From Rebecca billardiae RCC1528 (Eukaryota; Protista; Haptophyta), in contig OZ251234.1 of assembly GCA_965240325.2 (NCBI GenBank), positions 1,054,001-1,118,000 on the forward strand: a stretch of 64,000 nt of DNA. The letters are read 5' to 3'. The translations under genes and the position numbers were made by a program. Shown in pieces: positions 51,801 through 59,273 of the stretch. The number at the start of each line of letters is the position of its first letter. The stretch's first letter is position 1. Under the pieces are notes generated by a model that was given only the letters and a program-made list of their open reading frames with translations, made no database searches and was not told the DNA's origin.

Positions 51801-52877
51801 CGGGCCTGCATCTGCCGCGGGCGCAGGCTCAGCTGAGCGCGCGCAGGGCACGCATGCCGAGGCCGGGCCTGAGGCCGGGCCTGCGCCGCCACGAGCGCGA
51901 CCGTCGGTGTCGCCTGCGGCCGCACGGCACGGCACCGCGCTCGCACCTGCCTCGGCGTCGGAGAAGGGCGTTTCGCCGACGTCGTGCACCACGAGAATGT
52001 CGGCCGGCCTCGCGGCAGTCAGCTGCGCCAGGCTCGCAGCGGGCGGCTGCGCGCCACTCTCCGCTCCACCCGCGCCCTCGGCATCCTCCCGGGCGCCATC
52101 GCGCACGGCGGCGGTGGCCCAGGCGCGCAGAGGCGGCGGAGCGGGGCGTCCGTCCGGCGGCGGATGCACATGTGTGCGTGCCGTCGTAGCTGACGTCGAT
52201 GGCCGCCCGGCGTCGCGCGTCGGCGCCGTCCGCGCCGAGTGCGCGCGCGGCGTGGAAGCTGCGCTGAGCGGCGTGCGCAAGCGCGGCGTGCTCACGCCCG
52301 GCTCAGCCGCGGGGCCAGGCAGCGCGGCGCGCGCCGTGTGCGGCCGGTGATTGCGCGCCGAGAGTGGCGGCACCGTCGCTTTCGAGGGCTCGGGCCCAGG
52401 CTTGGGCGCGGTGCGCTTCCGCCGGAGCGGCTTCGCGCCCCTTCCGTCCAGCTCAGCCGCCGTCCATTTTGGAATCACTCGTCTAGGGGCCGGCGCAGGC
52501 AGCTCCGGCGCGGGCAGCTCCGGCGCCGGGCTGGGTGTGGCTGTGGAACGATCCGCCTGCTCGCAGCACTGCTGCTCGCAGTCGAGCGTGGGCACGTCCG
52601 CCAGATGCGGCGGCGGCGGCGGCGGCTCGGCGGGCCACGCCGCGCGCAGCCCGAGCGCGACGCGTTCGCTGCGCTCGCGCTCCTCCAGCTCAAGTGATGC
52701 GCACTCCCGCTGCCTGAGCGCGTACACGGCGGCAGCCGAGCCGCTTGGCGCGTGCTGGAGGTATGCATCTAGAGCTGCGACGACATCGCACAGCGCGTAT
52801 GTCTCCAAGTCGTACAGCTCGACGAGGTGCAGCTGAGCGAATGGCGCTGGCGCGTCCTCAACCGCCGCACTCGCCAT
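48891..52877 (-). CDS. Tubulin-tyrosine-ligase-like (TTLL) polyglutamylase with long low-complexity N-terminus
   Basis: QRVNHFP, WILKP..SSRGRGI, VQRYV..P, KLDLRLYVL, HLTN, FELFGYDVL, PWLIEVNSSPSL. Confidence 0.92.
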   Translation of the reverse strand: MASAAVEDAPAPFAQLHLVELYDLETYALCDVVAALDAYLQHAPSGSAAAVYALRQRECASLELEERERSERVALGLRAAWPAEPPPPPPHLADVPTLDCEQQCCEQADRSTATPSPAPELPAPELPAPAPRRVIPKWTAAELDGRGAKPLRRKRTAPKPGPEPSKATVPPLSARNHRPHTARAALPGPAAEPGVSTPRLRTPLSAASTPRAHSARTAPTRDAGRPSTSATTARTHVHPPPDGRPAPPPLRAWATAAVRDGAREDAEGAGGAESGAQPPAASLAQLTAARPADILVVHDVGETPFSDAEAGASAVPCRAAAGDTDGRARGGAGPASGPASACVPCARSAEPAPAADAGPAPPCVPSARSAERAPAADGGSAEPPPAADDSHASAPPAEPLQAEPPRAGGAPAPAALEELRCDWPTHEGACAADWPPQKGAAAAAALPGGAHGVWAAEPPSALLDGAPAAHHSTARAEAAAVEVGAQGGAPTHDVGADATASLSADTLERAGDERSSPEEPTSACSPRSAHGAAPAAAEQGFTPCAEHAPRAPAARARAVAGASTAESDLERMAQRLQPLFPAAPAAACVAAARAAQGQWERAVSALFDRWVLGDGVSLADTLATHHSSSRRAVAPPTGSACRSAESAQGPGPAPGAVRGYGPQLRSIEDLLTLPHRGAAALSGGAPHGPASALASALDALECSLRAWRSAQRAAGCAQPDGARGGAEAEARGSEGEGSDTAGAAGGRSAPAAQSPAARRPPLVEKAAEPRYFCVQRARADVVGIVNDVLLQGGRAGVRAGAWARAPDAAMVPPAPAELGGAAGGAAGGSTAGGDAPLWAPPFNLLWTWRAPRIDWSRLLRFQRVNHFPRASGRVLSDKERLKRALDAHARRHGAAFSELLPLTFALPQEYVQFAHAFGEAEAAARAAPAPQPGAEPAPNVWILKPADSSRGRGIRLVDSISQVHYARRTVVQRYVPRPLTLGGRKLDLRLYVLLTSVQPLEAFLYTEGLARLASRPFTLERAALSDPLVHLTNTAVQRHASSRAEAAAHDADGSSAGGSDGDGDDDDDNQGGTDAADAAADGAREHGAAPAAATKISLAQLRAALEADGIDFARVWARVRETVVRSLVAVEHSIEPHPCAFELFGYDVLIEAGTLRPWLIEVNSSPSLERETQLDAALKERLIADTVRLVDPPAFDRAVLSRMASWRLAELGRSGRRTSRLVSPPFDHELHALLSGGRERGYGEMPAHLGMYERIAPSPTHERVVSRAGRRASAATASSSSSLMLPPRPPSAASTSSSAVLSSAASSSGSTSSAASAARSRHRVTTVV

Positions 52878-53027
52878 GCTGCAGCATCAAGCCGGCCGTT
52901 GTTGAGTGTTGACCAAAGTCCGGGACTCCGGGAGAGCTGGAGAGGCAGGAGATGCCCGAGCGACGGGCGGGACCACCCTTGGCCGCGGGGAGAAGGTCGC
53001 CGCGACGTCCGGGCGGCCGCAAGGGCG

Positions 53028-54974
53028 ATGGGTGGCAAGGGTCGACTGCATGCCCTGCTCGACCGCCCGGGGGACGTTGGAAAGGACTCGGTCCACACAG
53101 CTCTCGGCGCTGATCCCGGCGCGGCTACGAAGCGCGACAAGTTCGACCAATACCCGCTACACCGGCTATGCAATATGATGAAGGTCACGCCCGAGCTGTG
53201 CCGCATCGTGCTCGATGCGTATCGCGCGGCGGCTTCGAAGCCGGACGACGACGGCCTCTACCCCCTGCACTTGCTGTGTAACAACACCAGCATCAGCGTG
53301 GAGCTGTGGCACCTCGTGTACCAAGCGCATCCCGCCGCGGCCAAGCAGCCTGCCAAGGTCGGCGGGCGCTACCCGCTCCACTGTCTCTGCGCCAACGAGA
53401 GTATCACCCTCGAGCTGTGCCGCCTCGTCGTCGACGCGCATCGCGGCGCCGCGGCAGAGCGGCAGGGGCATAAGGACCGCCTCCCGCTGCACAATCTGTG
53501 CGAGAACCCGAGCGTCAGCTGGGAGCTGTGCCGTGTCGTGCTCGACGCGCACCCTGCCGCAGCCGACCAGCCGGACAAGGGCGGCGTGTACCCGCTGTAC
53601 AAACAGAAGCGCATCACGATGGAGGACCTCCCGACGAGCGCGCGCGCACGCGACCGCAGCAAGGCGAGCGCGGGCAGCTCGGCTGGCGGGACGAAGCGCC
53701 CGCGAGGCGACGCGGCTGGCGCGGGGCCCGAGCAGGCGGCGGGGCCATCGCCTGTGGGCGTCAAGACGAAGGGCGACCGCAGCAAGGCGAGCGCGGGCAG
53801 CTCGGCTGGCGGGACGAAGCGCCCGCAAGGCGACGCGGCTGGCGCGGGGCCCGAGCAGGCGGCGGGGCCATCGCCTGTGGGCGTCAAGACGAAGGGCGAC
53901 CGCAGCAAGGCGAGCGCGGGCAGCTCGGCTGGCGGGACGAAGCGCCCGCGAGGCGACGCGGCTGGCGCGGGGCCCGAGCAGGCGGCGGGGGCATCGCCTG
54001 TGGGCGTCAAGACGAAGGGCGACCGCAGCAAGGCGAGCGCGGGCAGCTCGGCTGGCGGGACGAAGCGCCCGCGAGGCGACGCGGCTGGCGCGGGGCCCGA
54101 GCAGGCGGCGGGGGCATCGCCGGTGCGCGTCAAGACGGAGGCCCCCGCAGCTCCACAGATCCCAGGCATCGCGCCGGACGTCGGGACCTGGGGCCAGGAT
54201 ATATTCTCTGTCGCCGTGATCTGCGCGCTCCCGGAGCGGCTCGGCAAGAAGAGAGGGTTAATTGGCCAGCTCAAGGAGATCGCGAATGCGGCGAGCATCA
54301 GCTCCAAAGCGGCGCGCGTTCACACCAACACCGTCCCCAACCAGTACGACTCCAAGTACCTGCACACGCTCGCCGATATCAACGCGTACGCGAAAGATGT
54401 GGACGCGGGCCGCGAGCGTCCGCCTGTGGTCGTGCACGTGATCGCTCACTCCAACGACTCGGACGGCACATTCGAGCTGGCCCGCGCCGGCAACCCCGGC
54501 GTCCCCGAGGGCGGCGAGAAGCTGCACGTGACCCAGCTGCGTACGCTCTTTCCGTCGGAGCACACGCACTTCTTCCTCAACACGTGCTGCAGCTGGCAGC
54601 ACAAGGGGGCGGAGCTCGCCAAGCGCCGCACGCCGCCGGCGAGCATTGTGGCGTACACGCGCGATGTGAACGACAAGGAGTGCCTGCGCGTCGCGACGCA
54701 GTACTACACGGCGCTTCAAGAGCACGGCCACGGCCCTGGGCTGGTGGCACACTTCTTGGCACGCGCAGAAATCCGCAGCTTGCGATTTGAGCGCAAGTCG
54801 TGCGAACGGCCGCCAGCAAATGAGCCAGCGCTGGCGCCAACAGAGGCTCAGGCTTGCCCAGATGGCCGCAGGTGTAAGTGCAAGCTGGTGCGCGACCTGA
54901 CTGCCCGTGACATCCTCATCACGTGGCCCACTGACCACGCCTCGGGCTCGGCGGCGGCATCACTTGAGCCATGA
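53028..54974 (+). CDS. Ankyrin-like (YPLH) repeats plus 4x41-aa repeat plus CHAT (caspase-like) protease domain
   Basis: Four G.YPLH.LC.N repeats; VVHVIAHS (His), FFLNTCCS (Cys) and IVAYTRDVNDKE...ATQYY.AL match the CHAT consensus. Confidence 0.75.
   Translation: MGGKGRLHALLDRPGDVGKDSVHTALGADPGAATKRDKFDQYPLHRLCNMMKVTPELCRIVLDAYRAAASKPDDDGLYPLHLLCNNTSISVELWHLVYQAHPAAAKQPAKVGGRYPLHCLCANESITLELCRLVVDAHRGAAAERQGHKDRLPLHNLCENPSVSWELCRVVLDAHPAAADQPDKGGVYPLYKQKRITMEDLPTSARARDRSKASAGSSAGGTKRPRGDAAGAGPEQAAGPSPVGVKTKGDRSKASAGSSAGGTKRPQGDAAGAGPEQAAGPSPVGVKTKGDRSKASAGSSAGGTKRPRGDAAGAGPEQAAGASPVGVKTKGDRSKASAGSSAGGTKRPRGDAAGAGPEQAAGASPVRVKTEAPAAPQIPGIAPDVGTWGQDIFSVAVICALPERLGKKRGLIGQLKEIANAASISSKAARVHTNTVPNQYDSKYLHTLADINAYAKDVDAGRERPPVVVHVIAHSNDSDGTFELARAGNPGVPEGGEKLHVTQLRTLFPSEHTHFFLNTCCSWQHKGAELAKRRTPPASIVAYTRDVNDKECLRVATQYYTALQEHGHGPGLVAHFLARAEIRSLRFERKSCERPPANEPALAPTEAQACPDGRRCKCKLVRDLTARDILITWPTDHASGSAAASLEP
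53652..54138 (+). repeat. Coding tandem repeat, 123 bp x4
   Basis: Units start at 53652, 53775, 53898, 54021. Confidence 0.95.
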
Positions 54975-55288: not shown

Positions 55289-55388
55289 NNNNNNNNNNNN
55301 NNNNNNNNNNNNNNNNNNNNNNNNNNNNNNNNNNNNNNNNNNNNNNNNNNNNNNNNNNNNNNNNNNNNNNNNNNNNNNNNNNNNNNNN
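55289..55388. other. Assembly gap (100 N)
   Basis: Run of N. Confidence 1.
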
Positions 55389-55625: not shown

Positions 55626-56990
55626 TCATGCTGATGCCACTGGCCCGCCGAGCTCGGCGTAGCTGTGGCAGACGCGCTCGAGCGCCGCGAGCTGCAGGCA
55701 CAGCTCATCGGCAGCCATCCCATGGCGCTCGTACTGGTGGACGTACGCGCGCGCCGAGAAGAGCGCGCATGCGCGCGACACGATGCGCTGCATCGGCGGC
55801 AGCACAAGCTGCGAGTTGCTGACGAGCGTCGCCGTCTTGTCGTGCCCCTGCACGTGCCGCTCGCTCGCGCTCGTGAGCAGCGGGGCACCCGGCACCCACC
55901 GGCTGAACATGTCCGGGCGCGCGAGCGGGCCGGGCGGCTCCTCGAGCGCGCCAGGGCCACGCAGCACGAGCCACGCGGCGAGCGCGCGGCTCGCCGCGCG
56001 CGCGACCGAGCCGGAGGGCGTGCCCCTCCAGTCGATCTGATCCTCGAGCCTGCCGTCCGTGGCGGCCATCTGCGCGAGCGGGCGGAGCACCGCCGTCCAC
56101 CTGTCGGCGGTGTACCCGAGCGAGGCCGCCGGCGTCTGCGGCACCATGCGCACGCAGAGCAGCTTGTACGCCGGGTGCGGGCACAGATGCTGGAGGGGCG
56201 CGCCGAGCAGGCTGAGGCTGCCGCTGGCATCGGCGGCGGCTGTCGGCGCGCGCGCGCTTGGGGTGACCGAGCCGCCGCCGTGCGAAGCGGCGGAGGGCGC
56301 GGAGGGCGCGAGGATCGGGACGAGGTGGCGCGCGAGGAGCTTGTTCAGGTCGTCGTGCGACGGCCGCCCGATGCGCAGCACGCGCGAGCACACGTGCTCG
56401 AGCACGTCGTTCTCCAGCAGCAGCACCGCGTCGGCGGCGCCGCACAGGGTCGAGAGTGAAAGCGCGCAGTTGTACGGCTGCACGGCCACGTCGCCGCGCT
56501 CTCGGGGCCACACGGCCACGTTGGCGCGGAAGAGCTCGGGCCACTCGTCGCGAAGCGCCGCGGTCAGGTGCGCCCCGACGCCCGAGCCCGTCCCGCCCGC
56601 GAGCGCCTGGTACAGCAGCACGCCGTTGGCGCGGTCGCATGCCTCCAGCTCGGCGCGCACGAGCTCGCGCACCGACGGCCAGCACTTGGGCCCGTGCTCG
56701 CAGTAGCCGTGCGCCCAGTTGTTGCCCGAGCCGCCCTGCTCGTAGTGCTCGCGTGACGAGGCGTACGACCATCGGCCCGTCGCGAGCGCCGTGGCGGCCG
56801 CCGCGCGCACCGCCTTGGGCTCCATGTCGACCAGGACGGCGCGCGCCACGATCGCGTCCTCGCCGCCACCGCGGCGGGGCACGCGGCGGAAGTAGCGCTC
56901 GTCGGGCCCAGCGTCATCGTGGAGTGCATCGAGCGCGCTTTGGCCGACCTGATTGCCGCACTGGCCGAGCTGCAGAGTGATCGTGGCCAT
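55626..56990 (-). CDS. TUBD1: Delta-tubulin
   Basis: TLQLGQCGNQVG, ARAVLVDMEPK, GSGNNWAHGY, AGGTGSG, VQPYN, F.ARAYVHQY..HG. Confidence 0.92.
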   Translation of the reverse strand: MATITLQLGQCGNQVGQSALDALHDDAGPDERYFRRVPRRGGGEDAIVARAVLVDMEPKAVRAAAATALATGRWSYASSREHYEQGGSGNNWAHGYCEHGPKCWPSVRELVRAELEACDRANGVLLYQALAGGTGSGVGAHLTAALRDEWPELFRANVAVWPRERGDVAVQPYNCALSLSTLCGAADAVLLLENDVLEHVCSRVLRIGRPSHDDLNKLLARHLVPILAPSAPSAASHGGGSVTPSARAPTAAADASGSLSLLGAPLQHLCPHPAYKLLCVRMVPQTPAASLGYTADRWTAVLRPLAQMAATDGRLEDQIDWRGTPSGSVARAASRALAAWLVLRGPGALEEPPGPLARPDMFSRWVPGAPLLTSASERHVQGHDKTATLVSNSQLVLPPMQRIVSRACALFSARAYVHQYERHGMAADELCLQLAALERVCHSYAELGGPVASA

Positions 56991-57137
56991 GCGAGGAGCT
57001 GCTCTAGACGCCCGCAGACGCCATTCTTGATTTCTGAATGTGACCAACGACCGAGCAGATTTTCAGATTTCGTCACTTCAGCCCGCCGCTTCGCCGTCCG
57101 GTTGCCCACGTCGTCGTCGTCAAGCGAGTTGTGGGCG

Positions 57138-59273
57138 ATGACGACGACCGGGACGGCGGAGGATCTCGCCGCCGAGCGCGCGCGCGCCTCCTTCGACCCC
57201 GCCGAGGTGGAGGCACTTCTGCGCGGAGGCGCGCGCGCCGTGGAGGCACGCCACCGGCTGCTGGCGCGCATCGCCGCCGACCCGCTGCTCGGCACCGGCC
57301 GGCTCGATGACCACTTCCTCTCTCGCGCCGAGCGGTTCAAGCTGGGCTGCGCGCGCATGCGGCGCGTGTTCGAGCTGGGGCTCACGCGCGAGGAGGGCTT
57401 CGCCGAGCTCCGCCTCTTCCGCGAGGGCGGCGCGCTCGACAAGAACGGCGCGTTCGGGCTGCACACGGGCATGTTCATCCCGACGCTCGAGCTGCTCGGC
57501 ACCGACGCGCAGCGCGCAGAGTGGCTGCCGCGCGCGCGCTCGTGCGCCATCATCGGCACGTACGCGCAGACCGAGCTGGGCCACGGGACGAACCTGGCAG
57601 GGCTCGAGACCACCGCCGAGTACGACGCGCGCACGCAGGAGTTCGTCCTGCACACGCCCACCAAGACGGCGACCAAGTGGTGGCCGGGCGGTCTCGGCAA
57701 GTCCAGCACCCACGCCGTCGTGATGGCGCGGCTCACCACCCCCGACGGCGTCGGGCGCGGGCAGCAGTCGTTCGTCGTGCAGCTGCGCGACCTGCGCACG
57801 CACCTGCCGCTCCCCGGCATCGAGCTGGGCGACATCGGCCCAAAGTTTGGATACGGGAACGTCGACAACGGCTACTTGATCCTCGACCGCGTGCGCGTGC
57901 CGCGCGCGCACATGCTCGCGCGCTTCTCGTGCGTCGAGCCGGACGGCTCGTTCTCGACGACGGCGGACAACCCGAAGGCGGTGTACGGCACGATGCTCCA
58001 CGTGCGCGTGTACCTCGTCGAGGAGGCCTCGCTCGCCCTCGCGCACGCGACCACGATCGCCGCGCGCTACTCGGCAGTGCGCAGGCAGGGCGGCGGCGGC
58101 GGCGGCGGCGCGCACGGCGCCGAGCGCGCCGTCATAGACTATCAGACGCAGCAGGCGCGGCTGCTGCCGCTGATCGCGGGCGCGTACGCGGTGCACTTCG
58201 CCGCCGCCGCCGTGCGCCGGCGGTACGACCGCTTCCGCGAGACCTCCGACCTGCGCCTGCTCCCGGAGCTGCACGCCACCTCGAGCGCGCTCAAGTCGCA
58301 CTGCACGGGCCTCGCCGCGCGCGGCGTCGAGACGTGTCGCCTCCTGTGTGGTGGGCATGGCTACTCGATGGCGTCGGGGCTGCCGTCGCTGTACATGGAG
58401 TTCACGCCGTCGCAGACGTACGAGGGCGACAACGTCGTCCTGCTGCTGCAGTGCGCGCGTTGGATGGTTAAGCAGCTCGCGCACGGGGCCGCGGGCGGCG
58501 GCGAGCACGGCGGCGGTGACGGCGGCCGCAGCGGCAGCGGCGCCGCGCGCGCGGGCGCGAGCGGCGCGCTCATCGACCCGGACTCAGAGCTTGAGGACGT
58601 CGGGGCGTACCTGCGCAGGGCGGGCGCGGCGCCGAGCGAGGCCTCCGAGCCGCTCGCTCTCGCCCCGGCCGAGCTCGCCACCGAGCCGCGCGCGCTCCTC
58701 GGCCTGCTGCGCGAGGTGGCGCGCGTGCGTGCCATCCGCGCAGCGGCCGAGCTTGCACGGCACAGCGCCGGCGGGGGCGAGGCGCGCGCGGCGGAGGTGG
58801 CATGGAGCGAGCGCGCGAGCGTCGAGCTCGCGGCGGCGGCGAGCGCGCACGCGCGATACGTGCTCGCACTCTGCTTCCACTGCGCCGTCGCCCGCGCGCA
58901 CGCCGAGGCAGTCGCCTCGCGAGCCGCGCTCGCCGCGCTCGCGGCCGCCCGGGACCTCCACCTGCTGAGCGCTGCGGACGATCCGGACGTTGGCCGCACG
59001 CTGCTTGAGAGCGGGCGTGTGCGCGCCGAGCACACGCACGCGGTGCGCACGCGGCTCGGCGAGCTGCTCGCACGCGTGCGCCGCGACGCCGTCGCGCTCG
59101 TCGACGCGTTCGGCCTGACCGACCTCGAGCTCAACTCTGCCCTCGGCCGCGCCGACGGCGACGTGTACGGCGCGCTGTTGGACTGGGCGCGCCGCTCGCC
59201 GCTCAACCGCGCGCACGTGGTCGAGGGCTTCGAGGAGCACATCCGCCCGATCATGGGCGCGTGCAGCCTGTGA
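57138..59273 (+). CDS. ACOX1: Peroxisomal acyl-CoA oxidase
   Basis: LH.GMFIP, GTYAQTELGHG, KWWPGGLG, GDIGPK.G...VDNG, CGGHGYS, TYEGDNVVL, LNSALGR.DGDVY. Confidence 0.95.
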   Translation: MTTTGTAEDLAAERARASFDPAEVEALLRGGARAVEARHRLLARIAADPLLGTGRLDDHFLSRAERFKLGCARMRRVFELGLTREEGFAELRLFREGGALDKNGAFGLHTGMFIPTLELLGTDAQRAEWLPRARSCAIIGTYAQTELGHGTNLAGLETTAEYDARTQEFVLHTPTKTATKWWPGGLGKSSTHAVVMARLTTPDGVGRGQQSFVVQLRDLRTHLPLPGIELGDIGPKFGYGNVDNGYLILDRVRVPRAHMLARFSCVEPDGSFSTTADNPKAVYGTMLHVRVYLVEEASLALAHATTIAARYSAVRRQGGGGGGGAHGAERAVIDYQTQQARLLPLIAGAYAVHFAAAAVRRRYDRFRETSDLRLLPELHATSSALKSHCTGLAARGVETCRLLCGGHGYSMASGLPSLYMEFTPSQTYEGDNVVLLLQCARWMVKQLAHGAAGGGEHGGGDGGRSGSGAARAGASGALIDPDSELEDVGAYLRRAGAAPSEASEPLALAPAELATEPRALLGLLREVARVRAIRAAAELARHSAGGGEARAAEVAWSERASVELAAAASAHARYVLALCFHCAVARAHAEAVASRAALAALAAARDLHLLSAADDPDVGRTLLESGRVRAEHTHAVRTRLGELLARVRRDAVALVDAFGLTDLELNSALGRADGDVYGALLDWARRSPLNRAHVVEGFEEHIRPIMGACSL

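Follow-up and report, generated by a model that had tools for sequence, protein, structure and literature searches.

The ankyrin-linker-CHAT-like gene described here lies in a 64,000-nucleotide stretch of the haptophyte Rebecca billardiae RCC1528 (assembly GCA_965240325.2, contig OZ251234.1, positions 1,054,001 to 1,118,000 of the forward strand). This stretch is referred to below as the window, and all coordinates are counted from its first letter. The gene product is composed of three parts: an N-terminal ankyrin repeat module, a linker built from four near-identical units, and a C-terminal domain with a predicted caspase-like fold whose closest structural counterparts are CHAT proteases. 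The C-terminal domain represents a new, sequence-orphan CHAT-like family with few detectable relatives, fused in this protein to ankyrin repeats via a recently amplified linker. A layout of this kind was proposed in a preliminary description prepared from the sequence alone; it is supported by ankyrin matches, by the array found with Tandem Repeats Finder (TRF) and by an AlphaFold2 (AF2) model, and the architecture and motifs given there are confirmed. The features of the locus are listed in Table 1.

Table 1. Features of the ankyrin-linker-CHAT-like locus and its surroundings (window coordinates)
Feature	Position	Strand	Basis or remarks
Ankyrin-linker-CHAT-like gene	53028–54974	+	Single-exon open reading frame (ORF), 648 codons plus stop
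Ankyrin repeat domain, residues 42–201	53151–53630	+	Four 36–37-residue repeats plus truncated fifth
Tandem array, 4.0 x 123 bp, 41 residues per unit	53650–54141	+	TRF, period 123, 98% matches
Caspase-hemoglobinase-fold (CHAT-like) domain, residues 392–632 (model 6–246)	54201–54923	+	AF2 model, Foldseek, VIA, Atlas
Candidate catalytic His474 codon (model H88)	54447–54449	+	Just after predicted strand 3; VVVHVIAHS
Candidate catalytic Cys520 codon (model C134)	54585–54587	+	N-x-C motif, just after predicted strand 4; HFFLNTCCS
Divergent intergenic region, 150 bp, common to TTL-family gene	52878–53027	.	ORF positions
TTL-family (tubulin-modifying) gene, 1,328 residues	48891–52877	-	Pfam TTL, E 2.5e-60; head-to-head with ankyrin-CHAT-like gene
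Assembly gap, run of 100 N	55289–55388		In AT-richer 3' intergenic region, 315 bp downstream of ankyrin-CHAT-like gene
Divergent tubulin-superfamily gene	55626–57047	-	About 130 bits to beta-tubulin over first 220 residues
Acyl-CoA oxidase gene, intact	56919–59273	+	All five ACOX/ACAD Pfam domains

The ATG that begins the reading frame is the first in a longer open frame that extends back to position 52827. Across both globular parts, the in-frame GC content is 0.82–0.92 at third codon positions (GC3) versus 0.38–0.50 at second positions (GC2), and the neighbouring genes behave alike. GC3 is similarly high over the linker array (0.86–0.90), where it is highest in the frame of the flanking ankyrin and protease parts. 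Judged by its sequence, the reading frame is accepted as a genuine coding gene; the eukaryotic genome that carries it is GC-rich (61–78%) and intron-poor. The exact 648-residue protein is not present in the 15-billion-protein collection that was searched, so existing annotation may use another gene model, and the protein has no paralogue within the window. A single environmental sample matched the locus among the sequencing runs, with five 151-nt contigs at a depth of 2–3.

The ankyrin repeats begin at residues 42, 78, 115 and 152 with the motif YPLH/LPLH-x-LC-x-N, and the truncated fifth repeat begins with YPLY at residue 188. Their period is slightly longer than the roughly 33 residues expected for ankyrin repeats. 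The N-terminal 211 residues alone match the Pfam Ank_3 model with 25.1 bits, above the cut-off of 22.3. In a phmmer search of the PDB, a designed ankyrin protein aligns in register over residues 33–186 (E 1.8e-5), and gankyrin matches as well. Ankyrin clusters from haptophytes and diatoms score 0.96–0.97 in the ESM-Atlas feature search. The four ankyrin-like repeats in the preliminary description were therefore correctly identified, with Ank_3 above its cut-off and the PDB match in register.

The linker array occupies 492 bp and its units are close to identical, with only 5 of 123 aligned columns varying between them; four of these five differences change an amino acid and one is silent. A 40-mer taken from a linker unit is found four times in the window, and at no other place, against an expectation of zero. 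The units are rich in Ala, Gly, Ser, Pro, Lys and Arg. Each contains a basic motif, TKRPR in three units and TKRPQ in unit 2, and each carries VGVKTK except unit 4, which has VRVKTE. These repeats had been described as four near-identical 123-bp units with TKRPR/Q and VKTK, the last with VKTE, and both TRF and the alignment of the units bear this out. KRPR fits the pattern K-[KR]-x-[KR] known for monopartite nuclear-localization signals. In a shuffling test, its enrichment is due solely to the repetition of the unit. The suggestion that VKTE is a SUMO consensus site does not hold up: it is the single psi-K-x-E match (residues 368–371), and at least one such match occurs in 27% of shuffled proteins, which is the level of chance. 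The near-identity of the units points to recent duplication or homogenization. The label ‘expanding’, which had been attached to the linker, derives from this near-identity only. If the copy number of the unit varies, it would provide a natural series of tether lengths.

The C-terminal domain contains all three motifs that had been picked out in it: the His motif, the Cys motif and a downstream stretch, DVNDKECLRVATQYYTAL (VND.....A..YY.AL), which is predicted to be helical (model residues 163–180). The AF2 model was built without templates from a shallow alignment of seven sequences (A4) and has a mean predicted local distance difference test score (pLDDT) of 70.6 and a predicted template-modelling score (pTM) of 0.71; pLDDT rises to 74–93 around the His and Cys motifs. 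A single-sequence AlphaFold model was unusable (pLDDT 38). The elements of the A4 model run b1-a-b2-a-b3-[His]-hairpin-a-b4-[Cys]-a-b5-a-b6, which is the order of the caspase-hemoglobinase fold. H474 follows the strand formed by model residues 80–86 and C520 the strand formed by residues 128–131, and both strands are hydrophobic (VVVHVIAH and HFFLNTC). A His and a Cys each placed after a hydrophobic strand is the signature of clan CD. The two residues of the window protein follow strands 3 and 4 in this order, are conserved in the family and are 46 residues apart, within the spacing of about 40–50 residues looked for in clan-CD peptidases.

Structural searches with this model agree in leading to CHAT or caspase-like structures. 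With Foldseek against the PDB, the top-ranking chains come from the SAVED-CHAT filament 8tl0 (E 9e-7 to 3.5e-5), followed by caspases, C11 peptidases and Craspase. In a VIA-align comparison with 48,161 PDB representatives, 8tl0_A is again at the top, with Z 16.6 over 186 aligned residues and a root-mean-square deviation of 3.5; the aligned part (chain residues 299–505) is its CHAT domain, and identity is ~14%. The second tier (Z 9–12) is composed entirely of clan-CD or caspase-like structures. It includes Dronc (11.8) and the CHAT domain of DdvA (11.4), together with caspases, metacaspases, legumain, MALT1, Raptor, GPI transamidase, C11, Csx29, separase and gingipains. In the ESM-Atlas shape search, 8 of 10 rows carry PF12770 CHAT with template-modelling (TM) scores of 0.56–0.65, among them HetF (TM 0.65 over 204 residues); the other two are DUF6642 proteins, with TM scores of 0.56–0.58 by the query and 0.66–0.71 by the DUF6642 model. 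The ESM-Atlas feature search separately lists a CHAT cluster at 0.94, as well as DUF6642, and the viral structure library likewise gives caspase-like proteins.

A clan-CD, CHAT-like fold is thus well supported for the modelled domain. The caspase/HetF fold on which the preliminary description made its reading depend is adopted in the model, as seen from the SAVED-CHAT match at Z 16.6 and from HetF among the Atlas neighbours. Its assignment of a C-terminal CHAT domain stands with respect to the fold, the nearest solved structure being the CHAT domain of SAVED-CHAT, and fails with respect to the Pfam CHAT model, which is silent. We have filed the domain as a divergent CHAT-like family that is not a Pfam CHAT member by that family's own model. 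The dyad of SAVED-CHAT (H375 and C422) is separated by 47 residues in sequence and by about 4 Å in space, and H375A/C422A abolishes activity (bioRxiv 10.1101/2023.06.23.546230). The His474/Cys520 pair of the window protein is likely to be catalytically active, because both residues are conserved.

Relatives of the protease domain are few. An exhaustive HMMER scan of 1.84 billion representatives yielded only four proteins at E < 1e-3 (best 4.2e-7, 34–40% identity), and three others came from a profile word search, for seven in all. All seven are located on short marine-metagenome contigs of 0.5–3 kb with 55–69% GC, some of them from Tara Oceans. An apparent intron directly before the conserved block on one of these contigs is in keeping with a eukaryotic origin. 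Scans for related loci turned up none in viral contigs, nor in metagenome contigs when the window protein or P0005, a complete relative, was used as the query. On this sequence evidence the protease domain appears to be a very small orphan family, found otherwise only on marine eukaryote-like metagenome contigs. In the seven-sequence alignment the relatives are 26–33% identical to the window protein. Cys520 is invariant (7/7 family sequences), as is the Asn two positions ahead of it; His474 (VIAH-S) is kept in all six family sequences that cover its position, and a basic residue shortly downstream of the Cys is conserved in the family.

P0005 is a complete 238-residue stand-alone domain with its own start and an upstream neighbour on the opposite strand. 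It lies at positions 1104–1820 of a 3,038-bp marine metagenome contig (L006), flanked by a small gene without annotation and by a weak GH16-like gene, and the start of this contig carries a TPR fragment. Two other relatives depart from this layout at the N-terminal strand of the domain. It is in another frame in L003 (1–250 versus 244–744), and a Cys/Pro-rich stretch takes its place in L005 (about 90–300). This suggests short introns or frameshifts missed by prokaryote-style gene calls, with truncated database entries as the result.

Searches by sequence connect the domain to no known family. There is no match at E ≤ 10 to Pfam CHAT (PF12770) for the full protein, for its C-terminal part or for any of the seven family sequences; the Pfam CHAT search that had been proposed is thus negative for the protein and the six relatives scanned. 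The same seven sequences, which include the window domain, have no Pfam match of any kind. The hidden Markov model of DUF6642 (PF20347) also gives no match at E ≤ 10, and the similarity to that family is one of fold only. Membership in Peptidase_C14 finds no support either, as there is no Pfam match and no QACxG pentapeptide, the corresponding motif here being L-N-T-C-C-S. A phmmer search of the domain against the PDB gave no meaningful match, and the word-index protein search returned nothing for the domain alone or for the whole protein when restricted to residues 372–648. The first family profile matched Pin1 in the PDB at E 0.11, which is the level of chance. A tblastn search against plasmids gave only matches at E ≥ 4; the longest, in a Cupriavidus megaplasmid, is spurious, as it lies antisense to a gene for outer-membrane efflux.

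Fusions of a caspase-like protease with a sensor or adaptor module act as drivers of immunity and of regulated cell death from bacteria to fungi and animals, and the bacterial examples include gasdermin activators and CHAT proteases linked to clustered regularly interspaced short palindromic repeats (CRISPR) or to cyclic-oligonucleotide-based anti-phage signalling systems (CBASS). The window protein most resembles the CHAT group (PF12770; HetF, SAVED-CHAT, Csx29/TPR-CHAT, DdvA and fungal and coral TPR-CHAT), with SAVED-CHAT as the best structural match. As in that group, the His follows strand 3 and the Cys follows strand 4, with a spacing of 46 residues compared with 47 in SAVED-CHAT, and as in TPR-CHAT proteins the protease is C-terminal to a repeat-type interaction module. 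It differs in that the Pfam CHAT model does not match, ankyrin takes the place of TPR, SAVED or NACHT as the partner module, and a tandem-repeat disordered linker separates the modules. The motifs also differ, being H-S and N-x-C in place of the usual H-G and S-A-C.

Other clan-CD and CHAT-like proteins are more distant. DUF6642 is a bacterial stand-alone CHAT-like family of about 200 residues, similar in size to P0005; unlike it, the family described here is found only in a eukaryotic genome and on eukaryote-like marine contigs. Caspases and metacaspases (C14) have the fold in common with the window domain (Z 10–12), and its N-x-C motif echoes their Q-A-C, but structurally the domain is nearer to CHAT than to C14. 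Separase (C50; Z 9–10) is a eukaryotic clan-CD protease whose C-terminal catalytic domain follows a large helical-repeat region. In contrast to the window protein, which is small and lineage-restricted, separase is conserved throughout eukaryotes and much larger, and the two have no sequence relation. Eukaryotic CHAT proteins beyond separase had been called sparse, which is wrong in view of the coral, human and fungal cases (PMC12314368, PMC8851545): Acropora corals have about 276–304 TPR-CHAT genes and humans have TTC28 (PMC12314368), and fungal TPR-CHAT proteins cleave gasdermins (PMC8851545). We found no paper on CHAT proteins in haptophytes and none on DUF6642.

The best overall explanation, and one that we consider probable, is that the gene encodes a regulated, site-specific protease in which an ankyrin module is joined by a four-unit tether to a clan-CD, CHAT-like catalytic domain. 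The product would be a soluble three-part protein. Its N-terminal module of about 4.5 ankyrin repeats is most likely a binding site for a partner, a substrate or a regulator, and the middle would act as a low-complexity tether of roughly 165 residues. This tether is basic and may direct the protein to the nucleus through the KRPR motifs in three of its units. The C-terminus would be a cysteine endopeptidase using the putative His474/Cys520 dyad. In the most likely arrangement, the ankyrin module serves for recruitment or gating while the protease cleaves a defined target, with activation possibly occurring via self-association, as in caspases and SAVED-CHAT. A role in immunity or cell death would follow by pure analogy.

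Several observations weigh against this explanation. The fold is assigned from one predicted model that depends on a shallow seven-sequence alignment, and neither Pfam (CHAT PF12770, Peptidase_C14 and DUF6642 included) nor NCBIfam nor PADLOC has a match to the domain at E ≤ 10. The comparison of the family profile with the PDB reaches E 0.27 at best, for caspase-2 p18; in favour of the dyad, this weak match places the family His exactly on the His of the caspase SHG motif, and the same ‘...F’ helix pattern follows. The ankyrin-linker fusion occurs in no relative, and the sole complete one, P0005, is a stand-alone domain. No RNA run containing the locus was found among the public sequencing runs, which bears on whether the linker is translated or spliced. 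The TTL-family, tubulin-family and acyl-CoA oxidase neighbours give no functional hint.

Among the alternatives, the one that survives best, while still unlikely, accepts the protease and places it in cytoskeletal, centriolar or division biology, in the manner of separase and TTC28, instead of immunity or cell death. The gene has a presumed 150-bp divergent promoter region in common with the TTL-family gene, and a divergent tubulin-superfamily gene adjoins it on the other side; separase is among the structural neighbours (Z 9–10), and TTC28 has been reported in cytokinesis (PMC12314368). Gene order in eukaryotes seldom reflects function, however, and only two neighbours are involved.

We give somewhat less credence to each of two further alternatives, one concerning the chemistry of the domain and the other the gene model. 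The domain could have a caspase-like fold and act as a non-catalytic scaffold, a pseudo-protease comparable to Raptor and c-FLIP, serving in binding or oligomerization only. Both of these proteins are among its structural neighbours (Z 9.4–10.6), and its HS and NTC motifs depart from the canonical HG and QAC or SAC of CHAT proteases and caspases. Pseudo-proteases, however, usually lose at least one dyad residue, whereas here the His and Cys belong to the very small set of positions that stay conserved at 26–33% identity.

Alternatively, the gene model could be wrong mid-way, with the 492-bp array being intronic or mis-assembled in copy number and the real linker being shorter or missing. The assembly is a draft at this locus, with the 100-N gap a short distance downstream, and the copy number of a repeat near a gap is to be treated with care. 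The DNA is GC-rich and the array can also be read through in other frames, the differences between units mostly change the amino acid (four of five, against one silent), and the lack of an RNA run containing the locus points the same way. Against this, the length of the unit is exactly divisible by three and the array joins the ankyrin and protease parts in one stop-free frame, the frame in which its GC3 (0.86–0.90) is highest. The units also differ from one another, so the array is not a simple assembly duplicate.

Measurements on coccolithophores have shown ‘caspase-like’ activities during viral infection and when blooms collapse, and metacaspases do not readily account for them. It is conceivable, at long odds, that the domain founds an unrecognized clan-CD protease family limited to haptophyte-like marine protists and that it could be one of the enzymes behind these activities. 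This idea draws on there being just seven relatives that can be detected in about 15 billion proteins, none of them annotated, and on the N-x-C motif, the conserved basic residue after the Cys and the prospect of ankyrin-based recruitment. Least probable by far is a generic three-layer alpha/beta domain of receiver or Rossmann type that AlphaFold placed near the caspases: receiver and Rossmann (dehydrogenase) domains do appear in the VIA comparison (Z 8.3–8.8) and the single-sequence model had a pLDDT of 38, but these matches span only about 110–140 residues and lie 8 Z units below SAVED-CHAT, Foldseek against the PDB, VIA and Atlas each rank clan-CD or CHAT structures first with caspase-like proteins coming from the viral library, and the conserved His and Cys are exactly at the clan-CD dyad positions.

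For the ankyrin-tethered protease that we favour, the wider interest is that a marine alga carries a CHAT-like family invisible to standard annotation, so counts of cell-death proteases in phytoplankton would be underestimates. Because the stand-alone relative is small and the ankyrin-linker-protease layout simple, the family is biochemically tractable. The natural starting point is its cleavage specificity, together with any contribution to the caspase-like activities reported in haptophytes.

The genes around the locus are of varied types. The region between the ankyrin-CHAT-like gene and the TTL-family gene is presumed to be a bidirectional promoter. The tubulin-superfamily gene is, from its sequence, evidently not an alpha-, beta- or gamma-tubulin, because its match to beta-tubulin reaches only about 130 bits. 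The presence of two tubulin-related flanking genes could be a coincidence or could mark a co-regulated cytoskeletal neighbourhood. The open frame of the acyl-CoA oxidase gene begins with a GTG, and there it overlaps the tubulin-family gene of the opposite strand at the 5' end of the latter; because of this overlap, the true start is probably a downstream ATG.

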